From Amphiscolops sp. MND2022 (taxonomy: Eukaryota), in NCBI GenBank assembly GCA_964187785.1, contig OZ076413.1:63178001-63242000 (forward strand): DNA of 64,000 bases. The letters are read 5' to 3'. The notes under the pieces are model-generated. The model searched no databases. It saw nothing but the letters and a program-made list of their open reading frames with translations, and was not told the origin of the DNA. Positions within the stretch are counted from its first letter, which is position 1. Each line of letters starts with the position of its first letter. Both the position numbers and the translations under genes were made by a program. Below are positions 6,701-64,000 of this stretch, piece after piece.

Positions 6701-9700
6701 CAAAGTAAAAAGGAGAAAATAATAAAGCTGTTAGAATATTTCTGGGCGTATTAGATCCCTGAGTTCAGGGCGTCTTTTCATCTATAACTTGAGTGGGGAG
6801 AGATTGTTGAGAGTGTGTTTTGCTTGCAGTTGCTGAAGTGTATCGCGGACATCAAGGCCAAGCGAGAAGAGCAGCATGCGGCCTCAGTTTCCGTCTCCGA
6901 GAGCAAGAAGAAGTTGTTCCTCAGCAAAGAACGATTCTGGCCGGTACGTATTCTACACGACAGGGTTTTGACATCGCTAATACTCTGGTGTCTCTGCTTG
7001 CCGGGGGTACTAATTGCAGGGGTAGTTTGATTGAATAATTTGAGACAATACGTGGAGTCGATCTGTGTATTCAATGCGTTACGCTGACACCATTAGAATA
7101 ATTATTTTGAGGCATTGTCGAAGCCAGTTGCTTCCAATAAGCACTTTTCAACCAAGCTTTTTGGTTCGATATTCGATTGTTCAATGATTTGTCGGCTTAA
7201 TGCGCGGTTCCCAATCTGCTTATACGTTGTGACGTAACCCGTGGAAGTCTGATACGATTGTTAAGGGGGTCCTAATTTGAGGGGTCAATGATTTTGATCG
7301 TCATAGGTTAGGAAGCCCCCTTCAAAGGAACACCAGAGTATTAACTACTACTTGATAAACTGTTAATTTACTCACTATCATTGCTAATGATGCGACAAAC
7401 ATTTTTGCAACGTTTAATTGACCTTCAACAGCATTTTTTCAAGTGCGAAATTTTTTGGTTTCCAAAAAACGTTTGATCAATACAAAAATTTTTCCAGACA
7501 CGGATGGTTTTCCACAAAAACTTCGTTATGCACGTAAAGACAATCGCGGAAAAAGTTTCTTCCAATTATACTTGTACAATACTTTTTATGAAGTGTAATA
7601 TACTGGTTTTTCGTAACAAAAGTGTTTTGTAAGCCCTCTGCCTAAAAAGCGGCAGATCGACCCGCTGTTAACCTTAACTTGGCCAATGTGCCAAATTTGG
7701 CACATTTAGTTTCTGCAAATTCTTACCGCACCAGCTGATTGTATGGTAAAGCAAACCCTTTAATAAAAGTTTCAGACAATATTGCATAGCATTCGGCGCC
7801 TTTTCACGGAAAATTGATGTGATGTCTCCAAAATCCAGAAAATGAGGCGAAAAAATCCAAAGAAAAATAAGTGCAGATTTTCCGTTTTCCCAGTTTTCGT
7901 TTGTGCCCCTTTTATCCCACTGGTATCAACATTGGGTCAAAGCGGCCCCAGCATGTTTTGAAACATGCTGAAAAGCAAGCAGAGACACGACGCGTGCAAA
8001 GTTTTGGCGCAAAGTTCGGAGCCAGTGCGGCGAAGCCGCACGCCAGCGGGGAACTTCGCGTAAAAAATTTTGCGCGCAAGGGGCCCGCGGTAGCGGGCCC
8101 TAAGCCCAGCAGTTTAAAAATTGATTTGAAAGCCCCAATGCTCCTCTTTCGAACGCTGTATAAATCGTTTGTCGGACTTGTATAGTTCAGGAGATATTGC
8201 GGTTTAAAGTTGAAGCACCCGATTTTTGGATGGAACAAGATTTTTCCTGGCCAACTTAAGGTTAACCAGCTACGGTAGAGTTATCTATAAGTGCCTTCGG
8301 GGGCAAATAATTATGTAGCCCAGCCATTTCTGACGATCGATAAAATTGCGATACGACGACTTATTTGTATTTTGTGACTTCGAAAAAACTACAAAAGTTG
8401 ACTATTAATTTTTTCACATTGACAGTTTTATCTTTTTTAGTATCATTACAAAGTGAAACCTCAGCTGTCGAGCTGGATGAATGACTTGTCATCGAATAAA
8501 GACCTTTCTCACCTGGGCCGTAAAATTCCCTTCTTCCAGCGTCGTGAGGAACTGTTGTTTGCACTTGCCGAACACAAAGTGCCGCTCATCAAGGCAGTGT
8601 GGGTCATCAAACTGGATGCCTACCACAAAATGTCACAAGTGGACAACACTTCCAAAAAGGTCAGGTCACATCTTGAATCGATCGACTTGTTTCTCCGCTG
8701 TTTAGTGTAGTATCCATGATAGAATCTTTTAGATTCACCCCCTGTCTAAGTAATTAATAATGGTTCAGATTAATCAAGTTGATGACTTTGAGAAGCACAG
8801 ATTTAATAGCCATGTAGCAATTCACGAATTATTCAGTAATTAAATTCTATGAAATTCCACAGCGTCACATACCAAATTTTTAGGCGAGCATTAATGAGAG
8901 CAAAATTAGTCCTCCAACAATGTTGTTTTGATTTCTACTGCTGCATATCTCTCCGTCGTTAGCTGTATCTGTTAGGCTTCTCATAGGTTTTGTGTGCATG
9001 CCAATATGAGCCCATATTTAACGCTAGCATTGTGCGAAACTATCTGAACGCGACAAATGACACAATTGTCCCTATTAATGCTCAGCGTTTCTAGAGAAAA
9101 CCATTCCTTCTCGTGAACCTGTATCTAGAGCATTCAGATATTTAGTCATGACTCTAGATCATCAATTAATGGAATTTTCGAGTAGTTCAGATCTCAAAAT
9201 AACAGACGCTTTGGATATTTTAGATCTTTTTCACTTCACATTCTCTAGTCTGAAGCTTGGCCATTCGCAAGAAGAAACCCTGATTATCTCTAAAATCTCT
9301 CGATCTAAAACAGCTGTGGAAAAATGCAAATATATAAAACTTCGATTGCGATTGCGTCAAGCATATTATTTCACACATCCAAAAATATATAAATTTGATA
9401 TGTAGCAGAATGAAAAAGATGAAAGATTGGAGTAAGGAGAACATCGATGTTTGGAATATTTTCATATCAATCTAAATTACAGGCCGGCTTCTCGAAAATT
9501 TTTTAGTTGTCACTGGCAAACTGAGGAACACTCGGCGCTGACAGGTTCACCAAAGAGCAAAATCTGTTGAGAGCACAGTTGAAAAAGAAAGAATTCTAAT
9601 TTAATACTATAATAATTTGATGTGTTTTGAGATCCATCAAAAAACACGTCATTTCTTTAAGGAACTTTTTTGTGGATTCTGAGAAAAGTCGCAACTGAGG

Positions 9701-12700
9701 AACAGTCGAAGCTGGCCGGTCTTTCAACAAACACTTCCAGTGAAAAAAACACCGTCTGAAAGATGAACCACATTAAAAACAACATGAATGTTCACCCAGA
9801 ATCGAAATCCATGAAAAATAACACGCAGTTTATTCGAAAAACTTCCAAGCTTCCACTGACCAAATGAGGAACAGTCAAAACCAGCAGGTCCACCAGAGAT
9901 CAATAAAAAGCACCGTTGGAAAGATGGAATTCAAAGGAAACTGTCATGATTGTCCGATTTGTTGAGACCCATCAAGAAAAACATTTGTTCAAGAAGCATT
10001 CATTTTTGGGTCCTGCGAGGCATATGGCAGGTTTAATAACAAACAATTCCACCGTGAAAAGCATCGCCTGAAAGATGAAAGAAAACACAAACATGAATGT
10101 TCGATCACAATTGATATCCATGAAAAGAGGCAGTCGTTTTTTTCGAAAATCTTATCCAAACTTCTACTGACCAACTGAGAAACAGTCAAAACCAGCAGGT
10201 CCACCAAGGACAAAAGCCTCTAAAAAGACAATGCTCAGACCAAATAGAGACTATATTCTGCGGTAAACAGATCTGGAATAAACAAATTACAGATCCAATT
10301 GAGAATATTACCAACCGAGTGGATGCCTGAAGTGAATTTAACATGCATATGCTTGCTTCGCCCTCTGCTTCTTGTGGAATAATCACTGAAGAAGCAAGTT
10401 CCGATGACGTAAACGTTGATAATATACCTGAGTTGTTACAAATATCACAATTATCGTTCCGTTCTTAGTGGTAAAAAAGAGCAACGTACGAGTTTGTCTG
10501 AACACCAAGAAGCGTTTGAATTTTTCCTAACGACTGAATTCAAACTTTCTTCTCGAAAGCGATCACAGAATGTCATTCTAGTTGTACTCAAAACCCTCAG
10601 AGACAATACTGGCTGCATTCTTTCGTCTAGATTAGGTTTCTGAACACACTTTCCACAAATTTCTGATGCGCAAGTCGTTTCCATATCGCTGAGTTTTCCA
10701 AGGTTAACCAATTGACTCTCACGTAAAGTGTCCGCATGATAACTTGAAATGCTCACAGCCGATAGAAACAACAACAGCAGTTTTTCCGGCGGAGAAAGTG
10801 AACCTTTCTCTTCTGTTCAAAAACCTTTGTCCTTGGTTCTTACAACAGCATGGGCGAAGTTCTGTTCAATCGGCAATACAAAATTGAAAATTGAACCTTG
10901 ATTTTTCTAACGACCCATGACTTTGTTGTATTTCACGCGGGAACAAAATCTTTGACAAAGCTCAGACATTTTCGTCACGGAAGTGTTATTCTGCATTGTG
11001 CCCTGTGAAGCATCGCCCGCTCGCTTTCTAAATTTTGCAATAAGAGCTTCTGGTTTCTCAGAGAATTCCACTTTTAGCCCTGGCGGTTTCATGGTACCAC
11101 TGAACGTTCGGACAAGTGAATGGTTGGCGAACTCAAACGCAAAACCGGAGCTGTTCCAGAGACGATCGGTTCAATCGACTCGGTCAAAGGTGACGTATTG
11201 ACTGAAAACTATAACTCTGCATTTCTTTGTCAAAGAGCTCCTTGAATGTATCGAAGAACACGTCGTTCAAAGGCGACACTTTATTGATTTCTTCTTTATC
11301 GGCATTCTTGAGAGAGAAAGAGAAGTCGAATGGAATGGCTAATGAGAAGGTCCAAAAACGTTTTAGTTCGGCAGACACGGTGCATGTTTCTTGCGTGGCC
11401 AATGGGATTAAGTGTAAAAACAGCAATTGGAAGTGAGTGGCTTGCAGAAAATTCAATACTTGTGACGTTCTAGGTTTTGCAAAAAATTTTCGGTATCAGG
11501 CTCTAATCTAGGTGAATAATTAAAGTTCACTTTCTCTTAAATGAACAAGTTTTGCAAGAGAATTTTTGAACAGAAATTTCCTGGTCCCTAGAGAAAAGTG
11601 GTACATTGCATCGATTGGGGAACTGAGAAGAAAGGAAAAACATGAGCTGAAGTGCGAAATTCTCTTCATCCGACAACAGGCTCTCCTTTCGATAGGGCCT
11701 ACTTTTGTTTCTGGAATTTTCACTTTCGTAACTGTATTCCAGAATCACGTGGATAAAATAGAGATCCCATTTTTTCTCACATCAAACAATGCGTGCAACC
11801 AATGAATCCATTGAATTGCATCATATTCAATGCAGTAGCATTGACTGGCATATCGCAAACTTCAGTTTAAGAAATACATCATGCCATTTGAGCTTGCTGG
11901 TCCCGTGCCACAATGCCAAAAATGTGAGGTTGCGATAACTTGATTTCAATTTAGGGGTAATTTATGACATTGCAGCCAGAAAGGCCATACAGTAAGTATT
12001 CTGGATTTCAAACTTGGGGCGCCATCCATTTTCAAAATCAACTGCACTCCACTGTGTCCAAAAGGGCAGCCGGGAGACTCATAGTGTTTTCCATTCGACC
12101 AGGTGTTGCGGATATGTTGGTTTGTAGTGATTTTAAATCTGAAATCAGAGTTGATTGTTGAAACGAAACACCGCAAATGATGCTCAGTCTTTGACGTGAC
12201 CGTGAGGAAAGACTTGATTAGGTTGCGGAAGGAATTGTTGTGATTATTTCAATTTTTTTTTATTGTCTTTGAGCAAACGTGTTTCTCGAACCAAAATTCT
12301 CGAAATTTTCAGCTAATATTAGTGTGAGTGGCACCTTAGGACGGGGGTGAACTCGTCATCAACGTAGAGTTTTTATTAAAGTTAGAATTGGCTCTTTCGT
12401 GGCGACTGCGCCCAAGTTCGCCGAGAGTGTCCTCCAAGGGTACCATCTCCGTCTTATGTTGCCAGTAGTTGTGAACAGGGATGACGCTCTGGGAGATTGA
12501 TAATTTTACTGCGAATCCAATCTTACGAACTAGCCCAGAAGTATCCTCAGCCATCGTCGACAGGAAAAGTTCAGCCATTTACATCGAGCGAAAGTTGATT
12601 TTTCACACAGATTTCAATAGCATAGAAGCTAATCTCGAAAAATAGTTGAGCTGAGAGAACACTTAGATGATGAGCTATCATTTTAAACGGTGAAAAAAGG

Positions 12701-15700
12701 AATCAAATTGCTGAAAGTATCAAACGCAGGAATTTTAATATGATTTTTCAGTTGATTGCGTTTGCAAGTTGACGATAGTTCCGACGGAACTTCGATCAGC
12801 AGCGTCTGTCGACGATTTTTTTTGAAATCTCTGCCATCAATCGTTCCAAAAACAGTCTCAAAATCTAAGACACTCCCTGGGTCTGATTCCTGTGTTACCA
12901 TTTTCTCCATGTTTACGTAGCCGACGCGAAGCATGAAATCTGTCAACGGTAAATTGTTTCGTTCTATCTTGTGTGCGAGACTTTGCGTGCTCTCAATGGG
13001 CGCTGAAAAGTGTCTTGTTCGCTCTCTTCTCTTCGCGTTCGGAAGCTGGGGGAACGAGTTCCTATGTCACCGAAAAAAGTGTTTACGATTGAAAGCCGAT
13101 ACCTTTGTTAGTTCACTTCGAGATCCTTCTCCACGACTTCTTGAACTGCAAATCCCTCTCGAGAATATTCAATGTTAGCTTCAAAGGGTGCCCTAACGAA
13201 AGAAATAAACCGAGTGTTGACAGTGTTTGGTTCAGACGTGCACTTCTTTTGTCGGAAAAGTCGTTAACGCCCTCATGGATCTCTCTCGTTGACAATCCAG
13301 AGAAAAAACTTTGAGTCCAGCAGTAACGCAGCCGGGAAATGAAATAACTTCAATGAAGACAGCTGTCAGAGAAGGTGGTCAATGGAAGGTAATCAAACGC
13401 TTTGAAGACTGGAAACGAGTGGGACCTCGTAATCTCTGGCAAGTACATTTTTCGAAATCTCTGTTGTAAGTGAAAGGTCTCCAGTGAAAGGAAGTTTGTG
13501 ACTCCGCATTTCTCCAACATCGATGAATTTCTTGATAAATCGCGATCTCCTGTTGCCAGAAACTTCCAAGTGAAGTGAGTGCAGAAGCTCTTCTATTGGA
13601 TTCAGCAGATGCTTATTTCTGTTGTCTTAATAATATCTGAAAGTTTTTTCTGAGTGGGGAAAAGAAGAACGAATAAGTCTATTCAGGTGTGACGACTGTG
13701 TCGTTGAACTTTCTTACAATTGTCGCGTAGAACTTTCATAAGTGAAGGCGGACGCTGAATTTAGAGATTAAATTTTGAAAAGCTCGCTAACAGTGTAAAA
13801 AAGTTGGAAAAGTAGAGTGAAGAAATATTAAAAACGAAATATCATGCCAAATCATGATTCACAGTTTTGGTCGAGCTGAATGGCATAAGAAACTTGAATA
13901 ACAGCAATGAGTTTGTGATTGATTCACTAGTTTCAGTCGCCCTTCAAAAAGGGTGTATACTGTGAACCTGTACAGGAGAGGTTGGTCCTGTACTCGTCGG
14001 CAGGTCTCTAATCGGTGAATAGCGTTGTTTGAGGATTATTTACGAGAGAAGCATGTCCCCTGTGAGTAAACAAGGCTTCACTGTTTTTGGTGTTTCTTGC
14101 CGGGAAAGTCGCGATGTTATGGTCATTAAACATCACTTCTCCACTACCACGAATCCCCCGCGGTGACATCTGTTGCTGGGAGTAACTTAGGAGGCTGGTC
14201 GACTCTTCGAGAGCCCACCTCGTAAAGTTCATGCTCTCCGCCTGGATTTCTGTACTATTGCCGCCGCTCTGTTCTTGACATCAATTGTTCAAATTTGTCC
14301 CATGCCTCTTCCTATATGAAAAACTTGTTTCATTAGTCCTGGTTTCCCACTTCCGCAGATGAGTTATAATTTCCGCATGTCATTTTCGGTTTTTCCCCGG
14401 AATACATTCATCTTCCTCGTCACCGAAAACAAGTTCCTGGTATTCCTTTTATTACCACCTTCAAGTGATTTCGAGACTTCTTCAAGAGCCCAAGAAATGT
14501 TTAGTTTGCTCATTTCGTTTTTTTATCCTGCATCGTCCGTATATTTCTCGATTAGCTCCAAGTTAGACGTCATACTCTTGGACACGAAGATGTTTGGTGG
14601 CCTAATTTTGAAGCTGATTTCTTCCGCCACACTGTAGAGCAAGCTTTTTGGTATTGGAATTTTCATCTTTCCAATACTTGTCATCGTGCCTTATTCGCAT
14701 CAATGTGTTGTCGCTTCTCAAGTAACATATTGAAAATCATCGGGCAGCTTGAGTTCTTCGGCTTCTCGCTGACGCTGTTGACGGCTCCTTTCGAAAGTCT
14801 GAGCGCATCTAACTAACCTTTGAAGGCATTCTCCGTCACTATTTGGTACTGTTTCCTGGTTAGCTTCCTGATCTATTTCTCATCTTTCCTGGAATTCATC
14901 TGTTGAGTTTGTTACATGGTATATATCCATCCCAATTTTACTAACGTTTGTGATCTTAATGTGTCTAACCGAATTTTTTGCTCAGCCACTAATACAGAAG
15001 AAGCATCTCGTTCCGAAACCACACTTCAACATCGTCTCAGATATTCTTTCAAGCTTTCCAATCATGTGCTCACGTTTTTCAAGTAGGTTTCTTTGAACAT
15101 TATCTCTGGGAAAGTTTGGAATTTCAAATATTCGGAATACGTGATATTCCGAGGGAAAAGAGTTCCCAGTTTCATTTGAAACAGACGAAAACACTTGTTT
15201 TCGACTCCACCCAAAAATCTGAACATCCGTGGAAATAGCCTCTCTAAAAAACAGTTGCGCTTCCATTACTCCGCAATTTTAAAAACCTCCCGAATGAAAT
15301 TGGTTGACTCGGAAATTAGACAAGATTTTCACGTCATTGATGCCAACTTTTAATGACAGCTCAAAAGTAAATCAATATTTTGCTAATGGTTGACGTTGAA
15401 ACAGCAATATATTGAAACCCATCGGAGCAGAAGCGAGTTTGTAACAATGTCAACTCTTTGAGAGCTTCTCGCGTGAAGTTTCATGACTCCTCTTTAATTT
15501 TTGTAGAGTTGTCCAGCCGTTGCTCTATCTTCGATTTCATTCACGGAAGCTTGACACATTATTCCTGCTCTACAAAAAAACCTACCAATGTTTCATTTGT
15601 CTATAGTCTAGTATAATAAATGAACAAGTAAATAAGTCTGGTATCTATCTCTGAATAAGTGTGTCTTAATAATATCCGAAAGTTTTTTCTGAGTGGTGAA

Positions 15701-54700: not shown

Positions 54701-57700
54701 TGATGTTTTAATTTTTGTAAAACAGTATTTCCAAGTGTATAACCTGTAGATAACGTCTTTTGCGTTTGTGGTAAAATCGTGCTATACCAATGCATCTTTT
54801 TTGTAACATTCTTCAGTCCAATAGATGTTTCTTATAATTTTCACATTTTATTCCCTTCAAAAAAGCTGCAAGACCTCGCAAAAAATTGCTGATATTTTTC
54901 CAAGAAATGCAACTTGCTCTTTGGTGATTTTTCGTCGTTTTTCAGTGTTCAGACTGCAGTGAGTGCCATTGAAGACGGTCCGGAGTCGTGTTCTTCCTCA
55001 CAGAGGTGCTTGTTCCACCTGCTTGAACATCTCCTTGACTGTTCTGAGCTGTTGAAGCAGACTGTGAACCCCCCAGACAAGTACCAGCACATCCTCTCTG
55101 CTCTCAATCAGGCATGCCCAACAAGACTAACCCCCTCCCTGTAATAGATGAAAGTCCATTGATTTTTGAACCTATATTGCAAATATGGGATAGCGACGAG
55201 GTTTTCTCTAGGCCGCCTATTGTTATATTCTAATTCGTTGCTCCATAGAATTTAAGGATGACGATGTTTATTTCCCAAGCATTTCTTGACAAGTATCATC
55301 TTTAAAATGAAGTGTCACTAAGATAATTTTGAATTTTGAATTATTACCTAGAATCACCGAGATTACTGAAGATTACCTACAATTTAGAAAGTGCTAGCCT
55401 AATATTTCAAACTTTTTGTGCAAGTTTTGATCGATTTTTCAAATATTGTAAAATATGCTGTGCGGAAATTATCCCAATCCTTACCGGGCGCCTTGTTTTA
55501 ACACCATTTTCGCTGGGTGGGCGCCGCATAAACTTTTCTAAGTCAATTCCGTTTCGTATAGTATCTCCACATAAGCTAATGTTGCATCTTTTGAACCAAA
55601 AATTCAAGCGATGGTCGAATTGGAGCTGTAGTTTGGTCATCTACCGCTGGAGGCTAGTCCGTTACTGGCACCGTGGGAGAAGAGAAGTTGTATTTGATTG
55701 AAATGTTGTACTTTAGAAAAAAAAGAATTTTGCAAAATTGTACGCCGACTAAAAGTAAGGTGTTTTTTAGTCGGCGTTTTCGAAGAAAATCCCGACTCTT
55801 ACAGTGGCTAGTTTTTTTTCGTCAGTTCAACGCGTAACGTCCACTTTTTGTGCATTAATGCAATTAATGCACATTTACCAACTTTTACCATATGTACTTA
55901 GTACTTCATTTTCAACGCATCCAAAGCGTCTAACATGAGATAAAAAGCGTCCCCCCTTTTACATTTTTCGGCACTATGCGACTTACCGGAAACTTCGAAA
56001 AACAAATTTCAAAAAAAATTCGGAATTTTTTTTCTCAATTTTTAGTTTTTTGAGAGCTTTTGTTGTCTCCAGTTGTAGAAAAGTGGTTTTCGATTTTCGA
56101 GTCTTTTTGAGCCTTAGATATGGCGCCGACTTGGGCCGTTCCAGGCTTGTTTTAACTATCGGCCAAAATGATTTCTTTTCAATACGTTTGATCTTAATTC
56201 TAAGCCTATAATTTTCGAGCATGCCTGTTATGAACCAGCCGGTGCCCGTGCCAAAAATGACGTCAGAAAAGGTGACGTCATCGTCGGAAGACGCTGCAAT
56301 AGCCAAGAGCTTCCTGGAAAAACTCAGTGACGTGAACGAGGACGCGTTCTGTGAGATCATGTCTCGGTTGCAGACCAGAGACTCCTTCCGAGCTGTGTTC
56401 ATTTCGACAGCCTTGATCAAACTGTGCGACTTCAAGGATGTCGACAAAGTTCAGAAGTATGTCAGTTTGTCTTTAAGGTTTTTTTTTGTTCAAGACAAAT
56501 TTTAGAGGGGAAAGTTTTCTTAAGATGTTTCATATCTTGAATAAATGTCTCATATTTCAAAGCAACGTGTCGTTGTGTTCGTGGCAGAATTCAATGCCCA
56601 AGTGTTTGTCGGCTTTTTCGTTTCTCGGCAAAAACATTTGTCAACGCCGTAGCAACCTTGAAAAGTTATTCAACCTTAATTGGATGTGAGCTTCTTCTGT
56701 AAGATACTGTTGAACACGATTGAATCCCCAACAAAAACGGTTTTTATTTGAAAAGACCACTTTTGTTAAATTTTGTATCTTAAAATTGTCATTTTCTGTG
56801 TGTCGAACCTCTTCTTTATTTTCCAATGAGTTTTACGGGTCGTAACGTGATTGGCTGTTTCAGAGCTAACGAGTTATCTTTGCTGTGTGTGCAAGTGACG
56901 TCAGCAGTTCCCTTCCTCAAATCTGATTGGTTCACAGCTGTCAACATCATTTGCTCCCAAAAACCCTCTGGGGCCAATAAAGTACTTGACAGCTTGATAA
57001 AGAAAGTCAATGTGAGTTTTGTTTAACAGCAAGTTACTCAATGTTGAACCCTGGAGTCAGTGAAGTGTACGTGATAGAAGAAAGCGAAATTAGAATAGGA
57101 ATACACATTATACAAGAAAGTAATACCTCAATGAAGCTTATAAATTTTTGAATAACTGCTTGAAGTTTATGCAGTTTTTCATTTCTAACTCTATTTGACA
57201 AAATTGTGCAAGTTCTTTTAATTTTTCAAGCAAAAAACAAATTGGTCATCAAGTCAATGGCAATCACGTTTGATGAGTGCCCGAAACAGCATAAAAACGA
57301 CCCGAAACAGTCAGGCCCTGACTTGTTTTTCCGTGATTTATTTTTTCTTTAACCCCGGTGCTTCATTTTACTCTTTCATAGTTTTTTTAAAAATTGATTA
57401 CCAGTTTCATTTCACTCCCTCGGCGTCTTGGGGAATTTTGACATACCAAGGTTAAGAGTGTTTTCGCCGATATGTGTTCAAAATGTAACAATTTGTGTTG
57501 CAGATAGAGCACTCGCACGTGTTTGACAACGTGGTCGTCTTCATCTGCTACATGGTGGCCAGACACATGTTCAAGTTGGAGGAGGTCTTTGTCAAACTCA
57601 TCCACTTCATACTCGCCAGTCTGAACGAGAACTCGGACGCCTCGGGCCCTGGAGGTAGGCCACTATTGTTTGTTGTTTGTTTCTCACTTTCCGAGAAGAG

Positions 57701-58443: not shown

Positions 58444-58527
58444 GTATGTGAGGAATTTATCTACTAGCCATCTTCATTTCACTCAACGTGCATACGGGTT
58501 TCATTCCCTGCAAAAAGCCAGATAAAT

Positions 58528-58530
<3 letters not shown>

Positions 58531-58575
<45 letters not shown>
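58531..58575. repeat. (AAT)15 microsatellite
   Basis: Perfect run counted directly. Confidence 0.97.
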
Positions 58576-58580
<5 letters not shown>

Positions 58581-58860
58581 TCAGGGACAAGTTGCATTTT
58601 AATTTCCAAAAATCATACCAACTTCCTCGATTTTGTTATTATCCAAAATGCCATGTTGCACCATTATTATTAGACTTAATAATAATAATGACATTATTAA
58701 CAAAAATGCAACTTGTGCTCATATTTGCAACATGTCCCTGATTTTTTCACACTTTTTACACTTTTACTAACAACTGTTACATTATTAACAGAAATGCAAC
58801 TTGTCCTCATATTTGCAACATGTCCCTGATTTTTCACACTTTTTACACTTTTACTTTTTC
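58576..58860. repeat. Inverted repeat plus ~88 bp direct duplication
   Basis: AAAATCAGGGACAAGTTGCA at 58577 is inverted against TGCAACATGTCCCTGATTTT at ~58725 and ~58813; unit 58691-58778 is duplicated at 58779-58860. Confidence 0.85.
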
Positions 58861-59046: not shown

Positions 59047-59720
59047 TCAGCAGTTTTTCAGAAGAGACCATGCAGTCTTAATCTTTTGGTAGATTTTCTT
59101 GACAGCCTCTTGATTGAAGTTGAACTCCATCTGAATCAACATTTTCCGCACTTCCGTCATTTGTACTGATGATGTGACAGTCTCAGCGAGTAGGCTGCAT
59201 GCTCGTTTCTCCTCCTCTGTCCACCCAGTTTTCGTTTTTCTGAAAACAGACATGCTTTTGATGAAGCGCATTCGGGTTGGACTTCGTTGTCTGGGTTTGG
59301 GCGTTGGTTTGTTCCTCGTGGTTCCACGTGAACTTGGCCCAGGCGTGTAGGGTGGCTGATGGTTGTCTTCGTCATCAGCGTCGTCACCACAGGCTGGCTC
59401 TCTTCTCGTACGCTTTCGAACGGAGTGTTCTGGCGAAGGCAGGTTGTTGGCTTCGTCATTATCATCGTCATCGGAGGTCGACTCTCTTCTTCTTCGCTTT
59501 CGACCAGAGTGCAGATCCATCGTCGAATTCAGCGACGCTCTGTATGGTGCTCGCGGTTGAGGCTCCTCCTCTTCTGATACTGTATCAGAGTCAGAATCAG
59601 GGCAATGGTCGGCAGGCAATGGTTCAATTCCTGATTCATTGCCATCATCATCTTCATGAATTGTGTTAAGTTCTTTGCGGTACACATCAAGCACTTTATT
59701 TCTGTCAGCCTCTGTAACTC
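59047..59720 (-). CDS. Exon 4 of SET-recombinase gene: acidic/basic low-complexity tract and Myb/SANT-like tail
   Basis: D/E-rich and RKRRR-type segments followed by GWTEEEKRAC...KKIYQKIKTAW. Confidence 0.8.
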
Positions 59721-62700
59721 CTGAAACCACATTGTGAATAAATAAGTGATTGTAACAAAATTACAATCTGATATAAACATCAATGGAAAAAGTTGCATAA
59801 AAGATTTCAAATGTATCGGTAGTTTGGTATAAAATTATTTGCAAAGTTTGCTTACTTATGTAGTGTTTTTTCGCCGTTGATCTCGAGTGACCTGTCTGGG
59901 AGAAATGAGCTTCATCGTTGTCCTGCAGGTTCATCTTGTCAATATGCTCATCCCAGAACTTTCGAATTGACGTGGCATTGTACCTTGTCACTGTGGGATC
60001 GTCCCCAAACAACTCTGTGAAGCACTGGTTAATGTACCAGGCGATCTTCGTTTCCTGCCCATTTTGACTATTGGAGAAGACGTAGTCCGGAACGGTGCCA
60101 TACTCATCAAGCATCCGTTCCCGCATCTCTTGCACGAATTTGACTTGGTCCCCATCCATTTTCACGGCCACTGTGTAGTATTTTCCTGCAAACAATATAT
60201 TGTATTAAGTTAGAATAAAAACTTTTGTTGAACACTTTTTTATAGAAAAACCTTTATAATTTCTATAGAATAATACAATGTAGCGTTTTTTATAGTATTC
60301 ACTCTTTAAATTCTATAAAAAGTTACCTGTTTTGTGCTCGTTGGTTTCAATTGAGAATCCATGCCTCAAATGAGAATCAAATTGATCCCATTTTATGTTC
60401 AACAGTGGCCCAGGCCTCACATTGAGTCGAACTTGGAGCAGGAAAAAGTTGAGGGCCTTCAAGAAGTTTAGGCTCAACTTTTTGTCGTCGAGGTCGTTCG
60501 TCAGAGCTTCTATCACCTGCCGTTGTCGTTTGGTCACCTGTTGTTTTGTAGGCACTTGCGCGAACCTTTCTTTAGCTCCCTCGCGTTTTGACTTTGACAC
60601 ATCCACGCTGATTTTTCGTTTCACATCCCTGCAGGCCTTCTTCATAACTTCGATTTTGAAATCTTTCCTCACATTCGGTCTTTCGTAGCAGTTGCAATAC
60701 TCACAGAAGTTCTTGAAGTGAGTGAGGTAAATGTCAGTTGTTGTTGGCAGCCATCCCTTCCGCCGTTCTAAGTTTTCAATTGCTGGAGCCAGCGCTTTGG
60801 GCTGCGTTAGACCCAATGTTTGTCCATACAACAACGCAAGAACGTTCTTCAAGCCATCTTTCCCCTTCACTTCCTCATTTTCATCTGTATTTTTGCCTCT
60901 TTTGCGGAATTCCATGTTGACAAAGCTGGTGACAATGTCCAAGTGCTCCTCACGGGGAATACATCCATTCCTTAGTTTACATCTCAGTTCTACTGGCAAT
61001 GATCTAAACAGAAAAAGAACAAATTGTAGATTTTGCTTCCATTTTTCAATACCATAATTTAGGAAACACTACTTTATTCTTTGAGAGGTGATTTTTACTA
61101 TAACAAGTACTACAAATGTTTTAGTTCTAGTACTATTACTTTGCTTAAAGTTGTAACTTACGTTCTACTCTGATGATTAGCAACAACAGATATGTTGGAG
61201 TCATTGCACTTCATGCTCCTTTTGTGACTGGCCCTGTCTATGAATCTTCTGTTATGCTCAGAACAGAAGAACACTTTGGTGTTCGCATGAAGATGCTGAG
61301 TCCCGAAGAAGTCTTTCAGCATCACGATGTCAGATCTCGTCAGCTCTGGATGTTGTTGAGAGAGGTGCTTGTCGATCCGCTTCGAAGTCTTCTCGCAGAT
61401 AGGGCATTGGGTCACGTCGTCGTATTTGGTCTTCTTGGAGTACGATTTAGCTTTGCGCTGTTCAGTGCTATTGGAATCATCGGAACTATTACCCTTGCAA
61501 ACTTGGCACAAACATTGAACGTTATTCTGGCCAAAATAATTTCCCCCATAACTGACGAAAATTTCCTCATTCTCAGCAATCCCCCGAGTTGTTTCCACTC
61601 TCAACACAGTTTGATTTTTTGTTGGCCCTCCACAGACAAACACTGCATTGGGTTCACAGCTGTGGTTAATGAAGCTTGCTGGTCCTAGCATTATCCTCTC
61701 CTTTGAGTTGTTGTCTGTCGCCCCGAAGACAGAGAACGAAGGAGCGTTTTGTACTGCATCTGCGAAGTAGCCGTCGACACCACGAATTTTCAGTCCTTTC
61801 GGGAGCGCCTTGCGAGCTCTGACAGAAAACTCGATCCCGCCTTGGTATCCGGGAATGTCGACAGACTTGACACTTTCGAATGATGAAGAATAGGATTCCA
61901 TCATCTGACTGAAAAGCTTCTGGTGCTGGGGATTGTTGCTGATGATCGCAAAAAAATTTGTTGGTGGCTCAACGTACTTGTGGGAAGTACGTACGTCGGT
62001 ATCGATGAAGCTTTTTGTGCAGTATGCGTCAATAGCACCAAGTACCAAGTCTGGACGCATCTCGTCTTCCGTTTCAGGCAGTCTCAATAGTTGCGGCGAT
62101 ACAGTTTCTGGGAGAGCCTCGTCAGTGGATGTTGCAGTTTTTCTGTCAGAAGTTGACTCAGCTTTTTGCGGTGAATAGTCAGTTTGTGCTGGGGGTGAAT
62201 CGTCAGTGATGGCCAAAGTTCCAACATCAGGTGCTGACGCAGTTTGTGGAATTGGGTCGTCAGACGATTCTGGGGGTGAATCGTCAGTGAGGGCAAGAAT
62301 TTCAGCATCAGGTGAAACGGCCCTGGGTGCTGAAGTTTCACCATCAGGAGCTGACCTAGCTACTGGGGAGGAACCGTTACTTAGCGCTGAAGTTTGATCA
62401 TCAAGAGTTGACACAGCTTCTGATGGTAAATCGTTACTAGGTGCCGACGTTTCAGCATCAGGTGCTGACGCCGTTTGTGGAATTGGGTCGTCACACGATT
62501 CTGGGGGTGAATCGTCAGTGAGGGCAAAAATTTCAGCATCAGGTGAAACGGACCTGGGTGCTGAAGTTTCACCATCAGGAGCTGACATAGCTACTGGGGA
62601 GGCACCGTTAGTTAGCGCTGAAGTTTCATCATCAGGAGTTGACACGGCTTCTGGGGGTGAATCGTTAGTAGGTGCCAAAGTTTTAGCATCAGGAGCTGAC

Positions 62701-63014
62701 ACAGATTCTAGGGGTGACCCGCCAGTGGGTGACGAAGTCTCAGCATCGTGGGTGGGTTCAGAAATTTCAACGTGAGAAGCTGACGCAGGTTTTGTAAGTG
62801 GCTCTTCAGTGGGTACTGCAGTTCCATTGTTTATGGTGTTAAGTATAGGGGCATTAACCATGCTTGTTCCGTTTTCAATGTCACAGTTCGTCTTCTTTCC
62901 TCTCGTTTTCGGTTTTGGTTTCCCCTCGTATCCCTTCGGTTTTGCTGCAGGTGCAGTCTTGACTTGCTGCCGGGTGGCGCGGGTTAGAAGAGCTTGTGAT
63001 CGAAGGCTTGGCAT
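59047..63014 (-). CDS. 4-exon, 1177-aa fusion protein: Suv4-20-like SET domain + C2H2-like finger + tyrosine recombinase + Myb/SANT-like tail
   Basis: Exons 63014-61162, 61003-60327, 60185-59856, 59720-59047 total 3534 nt (1178 codons including stop). Introns AC|GTAAGT..TTTAG|A (158 bp), G|GTAACT..TGCAG|GA (141 bp) and A|GTAAGC..TTCAG|GA (135 bp) all preserve frame. SET: FSV...LGPASFINHSCEPN...EEIFVSYGGNYFGQNNVQCLCQVC. Recombinase: VRPG, HKTG, TSIRK, TGHSRSTAKKHY. Confidence 0.88.
59856..60185 (-). CDS. Exon 3 of SET-recombinase gene: C-terminal catalytic box
   Basis: YVF...NATSIRKF...QTGHSRSTAKKHY; His-to-Tyr spacing of 9 as in lambda Int and Cre. Confidence 0.87.
60327..61003 (-). CDS. Exon 2 of SET-recombinase gene: core-binding-like helices and first catalytic Arg/Lys
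   Basis: PTTTDIYLTHFKNFCEY; LQVRLNVRPGPLLNI; EHKTG. Confidence 0.85.
61162..63014 (-). CDS. Exon 1 of SET-recombinase gene: basic N-terminus, Pro/Ser/Thr/Asp repeats, SET + post-SET, CxxC..H...H finger
   Basis: 618-codon ORF; GPASFINHSC and CLCQVC motifs; CPICEKTSKRIDKHLSQQH; the ORF stop (TAA) lies inside a perfect GTAAGT donor. Confidence 0.9.
62225..62690 (-). repeat. 231 bp (77 aa) coding tandem duplication in the SET protein linker
   Basis: caggtgctgacgc at 62229 and 62460; peptide ...SAPDGETSAPR.VSPDAEI.ALTDDSPPES.DDPIPQTASAPD occurs twice. Confidence 0.9.
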
Positions 63015-64000
63015 TTTTAAGCAATTTGGCTATCAGTAGATTTTTTTACCGCTGTTAAGTTTCAACTTGTTTCCAAAGTGGAGCTGGGTTTAATGAAAAA
63101 TTTTTCAAAACTTGGAAGTCTAACAAATGTTAACTCACTCTGATGGACTCAATCACAAACGATGAGGCTCTATTAGACTCATTTTAAACGCAAACTGGTA
63201 TGCAACATGGTTGTTAAAGTTACACCTCTGATATTGAACTGGTTGTTAACATGAGTAATATGTTTACACCTGAGTTGTACGCTATGGTATTTTATGATTA
63301 GATAAACGAGGTCTTAAAACTAATATTGAATACGAAGGTATAAATATAAAAATGTTGGAAGTTTTACTGAATCTAGGAAAAGTGAACAAAAGATAAATAT
63401 ATGTTTGCAAAAGAAAAGTTTAGGAAGTTTGATCTTTGATGCAGAATGGGGCATGATTCAGTTTTTCAACAGCTTTCTTCTGGCAGTCAATATTTTTCTA
63501 TTGAGGGTTTGCCAGCTGGGCAGAGTCACATTGTTTGACATCATTTGTTGCTAAACACAAAAAAACTCTTATTAGTGTGTTTTTATAGTATACTGTATTG
63601 ATATATGGGGATAATAAGTTTTTAGAATACATATTTAAAGAAGAAAATTAATGTATGATATATGAAACTTTTTAATAGACATAACTTCATAACATTTAAA
63701 CAATAATACATTGTAGAATCTATGGGATTAACTCTATAATTTCTATAACAAAAGGTGCTTTGGAGAATATCTTATAGAATTCAAGATATAATTTCTATAG
63801 AAAAGTATTGTTGGGAATATCCTATGGAATTCGTCCTAGAACTTCTATAGAATAGTACTTTGGGAGATACTTTGGAAAAGTAATGTGATGTTAATAAGAA
63901 ATAAAACTGAGTATACCAGGTAAATTTGAGTTTCGTCTTGAGCATCTTTGTTCAGCAGGACATCTGCAACTCGAAGCATCTCGTTCGAAGGGTTTGAGTC

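Follow-up and report, generated by a model that had tools for sequence, protein, structure and literature searches.

Toward one end of the window considered here, a stretch of 64,000 nucleotides of contig OZ076413.1 (positions 63,178,001 to 63,242,000) from Amphiscolops sp. MND2022, the minus strand carries at 59047-63014 a predicted four-exon gene for a single fusion protein of 1177 amino acids, in which a SET domain resembling that of the Suv4-20 histone methyltransferases is followed by a predicted tyrosine recombinase. That the four exons encode one protein is supported by comparison of sequences. The gene forms part of a ~10.5-kb unit that recurs in the same assembly, and this unit is very probably a mobile element.

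The fusion gene and its two halves

The initial annotation had proposed that four open reading frames (ORFs) are joined through three GT-AG introns of phases 2, 1 and 1 into one protein of this length, and the proposal was reproduced: all four minus-strand ORFs are present (63014-61162, 61003-60327, 60185-59856 and 59720-59047), the joined exons amount to 3534 nucleotides with the sole stop codon at the end, and homologues cross every junction. Exon 1 (61162-63014) supplies amino acids 1-617 plus two nucleotides and encodes a disordered, repeat-rich N-terminus, the Suv4-20-like SET domain and a zinc-finger region. It is followed by intron 1 (61004-61161; 158 nucleotides, phase 2), which begins with GTAAGT and ends with TTTAG, and by exon 2 (60327-61003), where the core-binding (SAM-like) domain of the recombinase and the start of its catalytic domain, with R814 and K842, are encoded. 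Intron 2 (60186-60326; 141 nucleotides, phase 1) has the donor GTAACT and holds 50-bp repeats of the TTCTATAGAA type, and exon 3 (59856-60185) completes the catalytic domain with T915, R918, H943 and the presumptive nucleophile Y952. After intron 3 (59721-59855; 135 nucleotides, phase 1, donor GTAAGC), exon 4 (59047-59720) encodes an acidic/basic low-complexity tail and a conserved C-terminal segment of ~70 amino acids, and contains the stop codon, directly after which stands ATTAAA. The acceptors of all three introns are pyrimidine-rich and end in AG. Among the motifs found in the spliced protein are MLGPASFINHSC, SYGGNYFGQNNVQCLCQVC, RPGP, HKTG, SIRK and GHSRSTAKKHY.

The joins can be followed in homologues that are continuous where the window gene is split. 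At junction 1 the homologous ORFs P0003, P0004 and P0005 have the SET domain, the zinc finger and the N-terminal sequence of the recombinase in one unbroken frame, and the alignment, ...NHQS[KR]K-CLP.xLRxKL[KR]N in the homologues and, in the window, ...NHQSRT followed beyond the join by SLPVELRCKLRN, is exact across it. P0014 is continuous over junction 2 only, P0015, P0019 and P0025 over junctions 2 and 3, and P0056 aligns to amino acids 536-1174, that is, to the whole C-terminal part. Both the N-terminus (MP.LRSQ...) and the C-terminus of the window protein are kept in homologues, and because the two termini are common to them, the ATG at 63014 and the stop codon at 59047-59049 are taken to be the true limits of the gene. 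Database searches and folding, here and below, had as queries the separate exon pieces and the continuous homologues in place of the spliced 1177-amino-acid protein. The four sequencing runs that hold the sequence are of genomic DNA, with contigs that pass through the introns and a depth that is even into the flanks.

Two further features of the reading frame can be mentioned at this point. The intron 1 donor GTAAGT (61156-61161) places an in-frame TAA right after exon 1, and therefore an unspliced mRNA would encode a 618-amino-acid SET/zinc-finger protein lacking the recombinase; this intron-retention product is a possible regulatory isoform. The window copy also lacks three nucleotides (CTT) at 59909 that the five other copies compared and the contigs from all four DNA runs contain, an in-frame difference that accounts for a length of 1177 versus 1178 amino acids.

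The SET domain occupies amino acids ~319-512 (61479-62060, within exon 1) and gives a Pfam SET match with E 2.5e-9. The best 10 matches in a sequence search of the PDB were all KMT5B/KMT5C (SUV420H1/H2; E 5e-12 to 1e-10), the host di- and tri-methyltransferases of histone H4 lysine 20 (H4K20), and other SET families appeared only from E 4e-3. A predicted model of window amino acids 306-618, with a predicted local distance difference test score (pLDDT) of 72, led to the same family: the top 15 Foldseek matches were SUV420H1/H2, with E from 9e-12, and in VIA-align all 12 SUV4-20 entries scored Z 18.4-12.3 (~180 residues, root-mean-square deviation ~3 Å, 24-30% identity), the next family being SET7/9 at Z 9.8. 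Residues 14-207 of the model align to SUV420H1 63/72-334, from the N-terminal helical part through the post-SET region, and therefore the N-terminal helical region is present at least in part. Cofactor and zinc residues are in place (N450, H451, C453, Y489, C501, C503 and C506), and the NHxC, tyrosine and CxCxxC residues show little or no variation among 12 homologues that are 27-51% identical to the window protein. The first ~300 residues of the protein are encoded by tandem 57/231-nucleotide repeats and have a high content of S, P, D, E and T. Sequence and predicted fold thus support a Suv4-20/KMT5B/C-like SET domain in exon 1, which is what the initial annotation had read from its motifs.

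The recombinase was less readily seen. Exons 2, 3 and 4, each searched singly, gave no significant match in Pfam or in PDB sequence searches, and so it was recognized only through the collection of homologues, their alignment and structure prediction. Protein-language-model features of exon 2 pointed to Phage_int_SAM (phage-integrase SAM-like N-terminal) domains with scores of 0.96-0.97, and an exhaustive HMMER search with the same exon yielded 75 relatives. Near-invariant among the aligned relatives are the R of RxGP, HKxG, the R of SIRK, the H of QTGH and a Y nine residues after that H. The window protein accordingly has R814, K842, R918, H943 and Y952, five of the six residues of the classic catalytic set, and nearly every aligned homologue retains these five. 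A spacing of nine from H to Y is also that of XerD, lambda integrase and Cre.

Structure prediction was carried out on P0014, which is 48% identical to amino acids 696-954, and gave an AlphaFold2 model with a pLDDT of 89.7 and a predicted template modelling score (pTM) of 0.81. The top 46 matches to this model in a Foldseek search of the PDB were all tyrosine recombinases, and VIA-align gave Z 13.5 with XerH, 13.2 with XerA and 12.7 with Cre (186-245 residues), ~12 with Tn1549 integrase and ~11 with lambda integrase, type IB topoisomerases and Flp being lower. Structural comparison with AlphaFold models of Swiss-Prot proteins returned a top 30 made up entirely of Xer-type or related integrases, with no DUF3504 proteins among them, and the Atlas model of P0056 compared with XerC at a template modelling score (TM) of 0.75. 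The lysine in the P0014 model lies between two strands, in a beta hairpin, and a helix terminates at the tyrosine, the geometry expected from Cre. Pfam's SAM-like models were matched weakly by a few of 33 aligned family sequences, Pfam searches with 10 long homologues found no integrase match, and none of the 33 aligned sequences matched the Pfam model DUF3504 at E<=1. Fold comparison and conserved residues support the view that the C-terminal half is a two-domain tyrosine recombinase, with a core-binding and a catalytic domain.

Between the SET domain and the recombinase, amino acids 537-603 form a C2H2-like zinc-finger region (CPIC-x9-H-x4-H ... C-x2-H-x9-H-x5-C), and this is joined to the recombinase also in P0039, P0056, P0063, P0071 and P0078, relatives that have no SET domain. 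At the other end of the recombinase, the C-terminal ~70 amino acids (59050-59260) start with GWTEEE..., and P0015, P0025 and P0056 align up to amino acids ~1173-1175. From its sequence this segment is possibly Myb/SANT-like; Pfam gave no match for it in the window protein, and one cluster of relatives in the Atlas carries Myb_DNA-binding.

The 10.5-kb unit, its ends and its relatives

The exon-1 product (618 amino acids) belongs to a cluster at >=90% identity whose 15 different sequences are spread over 16 or more contigs, all in one ENA assembly. Comparison of the window with five other loci (L001, L004, L005, L006 and L007) defined a shared block of ~10.5 kb that is 97.9-99.7% identical, outside which the sequences are unrelated. 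Both boundaries of the block are sharp and identical among all six copies: on the left (ATT)n ATAAT-CCGGGACAACTTGC... and on the right ...GCAACTTGTCCCTGATTTTT (ATT)n, with (ATT)n flanking both sides in six of six. The mobile element that had been suggested for the locus is thereby borne out as a multi-copy, sharply bounded unit at no fewer than six loci with different flanks, and it proves larger than had been supposed, with a gene for a JmjC demethylase-like protein, terminal inverted repeats and an (ATT)n setting that the initial annotation had not included. Summed contig depth over the element in the DNA runs was ~6-13x that of unique flank, which fits a multi-copy element and is not to be read as a copy count. 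The window itself holds only the 3′ 5.5 kb, from its edge at 64000 down to ~58582.

The ends of the element are imperfect inverted repeats of ~18 bp accompanied by subterminal repeats of the GCAACTTG type. The right terminal inverted repeat lies at 58576-58596 on the minus strand and reads ...GCAACTTGTCCCTGATTTTT on the gene strand, matching the left terminus ATCCGGGACAACTTGC of full copies. Abutting it, at 58525-58581, is an (AAT)19 / (ATT)n microsatellite, identified with Tandem Repeats Finder and presumed to be the target or crossover sequence. Inward from the end, at 58691-58855, there are 1.9 copies of an 88-bp subterminal tandem repeat, each unit of which has a GCAACTTG motif and a terminus-like motif, TGTCCCTGATTTTT; judged from their sequence, these repeats are candidate binding sites for the recombinase. 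Nine of the ten matches to GCAA[C/G]TTG in L006 are within ~250 bp of the element ends, with 1.3 matches expected in the whole locus. A 27-nucleotide stretch at 54890-54917 in the window, ~3.7 kb beyond the end of the element, shows 78% identity with the subterminal repeat unit and has the palindrome GCAACTTGC at its end; either a remnant or a non-autonomous relative of the element may be represented here.

Full copies have a second spliced gene upstream of the SET-recombinase gene, which in L006 occupies positions ~7400-9170. Sequences encoded by its exons include ...TPWHVDFSGTSVFY... and ...GGVPHMV..., an HxD...H metal triad can be made out, and the exon with TPWHVDFSGTSVFY (L006:8236-8472) matches the JmjC domains of PHF8 and KDM2A with E 2e-10. 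What the window retains of this gene is the 3′ end of its last coding ORF, on the minus strand at 63845-64000 and cut by the window edge (ORF 63845-63979, corresponding to L006:8916-9170). The spacer between the JmjC and SET-recombinase genes has, at 63721-63865, 50-bp repeats with the palindrome TTCTATAGAA. Arrays with TTCTATAGAA and a period of ~50 bp are found at three places in the element: ahead of the JmjC gene, in the spacer that follows it, and within intron 2 of the SET-recombinase gene (60238-60322 and 63721-63865 in the window; L006:6412-7060, 9158-9294 and 12693-12777). Beside them are 99-bp tandem repeats and, also upstream of the JmjC gene, a perfect 260-bp palindrome (L006:6412-6671). 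From their sequence the arrays could be regulatory or could constitute an origin. ORFs of >=70 amino acids inside the unit belong only to the JmjC and SET-recombinase genes, and no reverse transcriptase was found among them, on which ground a retroelement of the DIRS or Ngaro kind was rejected; the lack of reverse transcriptase and RNase H also sets the unit apart from PAT elements.

The spliced ORF is intact in four of the six copies: 1177 amino acids in the window, 1178 in L001 and L006, and 1160 in L004, where there is an in-frame deletion of 54 nucleotides. L005 and L007 each have one nonsense codon. Distinct variants among the copies number 9 synonymous and 17 non-synonymous, which is close to neutral, as expected for copies drifting after insertion.

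Several copies are beside or inside Maverick/Polinton-like DNA with ORFs for an rve integrase and a double-jelly-roll capsid protein (L006:1-3960, L007:1-4054 and L003:19140-22414, the last with a member of one of the subfamilies described below). The left flank is common to L006 and L007 and only 86% identical, their elements are 99.5% identical, and their right flanks differ, a pattern that suggests either that two diverged Maverick copies each received an insertion of their own at one and the same site or that copies of the element recombined with each other.

The assembly also contains three diverged subfamilies (L002, L003 and L009), at 36-55% protein identity, each with the layout of SET domain followed by recombinase. 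Each has (ATT)n on either side, and CAAGTTGC/GCAACTTG motifs occur at the element ends. A JmjC homologue is present in L003 and L009, in other positions and orientations, so that JmjC occurs in three of the four subfamilies overall. Further afield, P0050, from an unrelated JGI metagenome, encodes a SET domain together with the recombinase region in a single unbroken ORF of 895 amino acids, with the recombinase motifs conserved. Many recombinase relatives have no SET domain. The best structural matches among AlphaFold-DB clusters are eukaryotic proteins, with TM up to 0.75 and no curated annotation, which go under automatic names such as ‘Uncharacterized protein’, ‘C2H2-type domain-containing protein’, ‘Tyr recombinase domain-containing’ and ‘Core-binding domain-containing’; one entry of 792 amino acids is automatically named after the H4K20 monomethyltransferase SETD8. 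The Atlas has related clusters in Chordata and Cnidaria, SET-bearing clusters of 1162 and 969 amino acids being among them. Similar predicted proteins that have gone unstudied, which the initial annotation had allowed for, therefore exist in several animal phyla. A word-based protein search with P0005 for full-length named SET-recombinase proteins, swamped by low-complexity words, returned the same assembly only.

Origin of the unit and a possible chromatin role

We consider it very probable that the minus-strand gene at 59047-63014 encodes the recombinase of a ~10.5-kb DNA transposon that has been active recently, also has a JmjC gene and resides inside (ATT)n. Several points weigh against this and should be kept in mind. 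The structural model of the recombinase is that of a homologue with 48% identity, P0014, and not of the window protein, and the Pfam Phage_integrase model matches just one of the 33 aligned family sequences (E 1.6e-5). The histidine of the HxxR motif is replaced by T915, three residues before R918, and most relatives have N there; this histidine is not universal within the tyrosine recombinase superfamily, and membership therefore stands though the chemistry may differ. Neither an excision product nor an empty site nor a circle was observed. The sole paralogous ‘empty’ site (L003 versus L006, with a Maverick-like flank) is 75% identical, has unrelated sequence at the site and is too diverged to show what stood there before insertion, and the comparisons do not distinguish (ATT)n pre-existing at the target from (ATT)n carried by the element. 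Methyltransferase activity and substrate of the SET domain are predictions from sequence and fold, and the splice pattern comes from sequence rules and comparison, the sequencing runs found being of DNA only.

The last of these points bears on the reading in which a SET/zinc-finger gene (exon 1, 618 amino acids) and a recombinase gene (exons 2-4) are independent neighbours in head-to-tail order, with a stop-free join that arose by chance. The in-frame TAA in the intron 1 donor, by which an unspliced transcript would give a complete SET protein, and the absence of SET from many recombinase relatives would suit it. It is nevertheless highly unlikely, as P0003, P0004 and P0005 are uninterrupted across predicted junction 1 with an exact match and P0050 has both domains in one ORF; exon 2 offers no plausible start of its own, and the zinc finger of exon 1 is also joined to the recombinase in SET-less relatives. 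That the locus is instead a single-copy or domesticated host gene, a chromatin regulator which captured a recombinase domain, is barely credible. Repeated domestication of Cryptons is documented in animals (PMC3212892), and the intact ORF with conserved catalytic residues is what such a gene would show, but the presence of at least six near-identical 10.5-kb copies with terminal inverted repeats at their ends, nonsense mutations in some of them, and a near-neutral substitution pattern among them is not. The sharp common boundaries and unrelated flanks led to rejection both of a host gene and of a segmental duplication.

A further, unlikely reading is that the element is extinct, its copies being relics of one burst that were moved by something else or are immobile, with the SET fusion a dead-end chimera. 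Two of six copies do have nonsense mutations and one a 54-nucleotide deletion, the HxxR histidine is replaced, and circles and polymorphism were not observed. Against this, identity among the copies is 97.9-99.7% over 10.5 kb with four ORFs intact, and the SET domain and recombinase, with JmjC in three of four subfamilies, have been kept together across subfamilies that are 36-55% identical and also in a distant metagenome protein, which argues for long-term selection on the combination.

For the transposon considered very probable above, the most likely scheme of movement would be the Crypton model with a microsatellite as target (for the model and activity, see PMC9977147). The recombinase would bind the terminal and subterminal repeats and pair the ends of the element, and strand exchange within the flanking ATT repeats would release a circle. 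At the junction of such a circle an (ATT)n spacer would separate two inverted arms, an arrangement formally comparable to lox or FRT with a repeat as spacer. The circle could then integrate into another (ATT)n tract, and in principle into any such tract because the repeat supplies the short identity that tyrosine recombinases require where crossover takes place; after excision just a microsatellite would remain.

The SET domain, being tethered to the recombinase, would probably bind or methylate H4K20 in nucleosomes of the element or of its target, and the JmjC enzyme may be its counterpart. Possible roles in chromatin include tethering to nucleosomes, marking of the element, circle or target by H4K20 methylation, and the countering of host silencing. 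That both a SET domain with intact cofactor and zinc residues and a JmjC gene in three of four subfamilies persist across deep divergence speaks for their both being of importance to the element. A tentative and rather doubtful extension is a chromatin programme run by the element itself, in which the SET domain writes H4K20 methylation on the element, the circle or the new (ATT)n site and the JmjC protein erases a competing mark. The outcome might be the recruitment of replication or repair factors that read H4K20 methylation, with copying of the circle or repair of its junction, or the element might simply be kept transcribed; retention of intron 1 would, under such a programme, provide a SET-only regulatory isoform. 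If true, this would be the first transposon known with a writer/eraser pair in its transposition machinery.

Comparison with known systems

Crypton DNA transposons, reportedly described by Goodwin et al. in 2003, are the obvious point of reference. The window element is like them in being a eukaryotic DNA element with a tyrosine recombinase as its sole recombination enzyme, no reverse transcriptase and an intron-containing gene. Cryptons show no classical target-site duplication but the same short sequence at both junctions, and the (ATT)n at both junctions of all copies and of the three other subfamilies may correspond to this, as would fit recombination with a near-identical target. Cryptons have been surveyed by Kojima & Jurka 2011 (PMC3212892) and their activity was shown in Chlamydomonas (PMC9977147). 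Little is known of the DNA transposons of animals that use a tyrosine recombinase, and the animal Cryptons were reported as minimal, recombinase-only elements without terminal repeats (PMC3212892). In contrast to these, the element here has the SET fusion, the zinc finger, the JmjC gene, ~18-bp inverted termini accompanied by subterminal repeats, and a presumed microsatellite target. These features support calling it a Crypton in the broad sense only, that of a eukaryotic DNA transposon moved by a tyrosine recombinase. An assignment to CryptonA or CryptonI, the animal Cryptons that are the source of DUF3504, is not supported, in view of the lack of a DUF3504 match in 33 sequences, the extra domains and the terminal inverted repeats, a separation made on these characters and not by phylogeny. 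The family adds to the animal elements an H4K20-type methyltransferase fusion, a histone-demethylase-like passenger gene and inverted termini in a strict microsatellite context, and its copies, being young and largely intact, are directly testable. How a recombinase deals with chromatin, how microsatellites serve as safe-harbour targets, and whether mobile elements manipulate host histone marks from within are among the questions opened.

Full-text literature searches returned no paper on a SET or Suv4-20 domain fused with a tyrosine recombinase, nor on a transposon with such a fusion together with JmjC, with Repbase and Dfam lying outside the search. Relatives appear to be widespread in animals yet unrecognized because Pfam misses the recombinase, and for the same reason surveys based on Pfam domains may overlook the element.

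The telomere-repeat-specific recombinases of endogenous nimaviruses in animal genomes provide a precedent for microsatellite-specific integration by zinc-finger tyrosine recombinases, their target being (TAACC)n (PMC10871703). They share with the window protein a C2H2 zinc-binding region, a SAM-like N-terminal domain and a catalytic set of which only some residues are recognizable (PMC10871703). The nimaviruses themselves, however, are giant viral genomes, whereas the element here is of 10.5 kb with two genes, an (ATT)n context and a SET fusion.

For the SET half it is KMT5B/KMT5C that give the best match in both sequence and structure, with NH.C, the tyrosine of the catalytic region and the post-SET C.C..C zinc cluster all conserved. 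Unlike those host enzymes, the window SET domain, ~25-28% identical to them over ~180 aligned residues, is embedded in a transposon protein, and its specificity is a prediction. Fusions of transposon proteins with chromatin domains, SET among them, are known, for instance SETMAR (bioRxiv 10.1101/2021.11.30.470311), where a SET methyltransferase and a transposon enzyme are likewise in one protein, and the present element adds another case of chromatin domains captured by transposons. SETMAR, however, is a host gene and has a mariner DDE transposase, whereas in the present case it is the mobile element itself that has the fusion, and this is to a tyrosine recombinase and involves an H4K20-type SET domain. 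Fungal DNA transposons with TET/JBP dioxygenases are similar in having an enzyme able to rewrite epigenetic marks; they differ, reportedly (PMC12730594), in being fungal and in having an enzyme for DNA demethylation encoded near the transposase gene and not fused to a recombinase.

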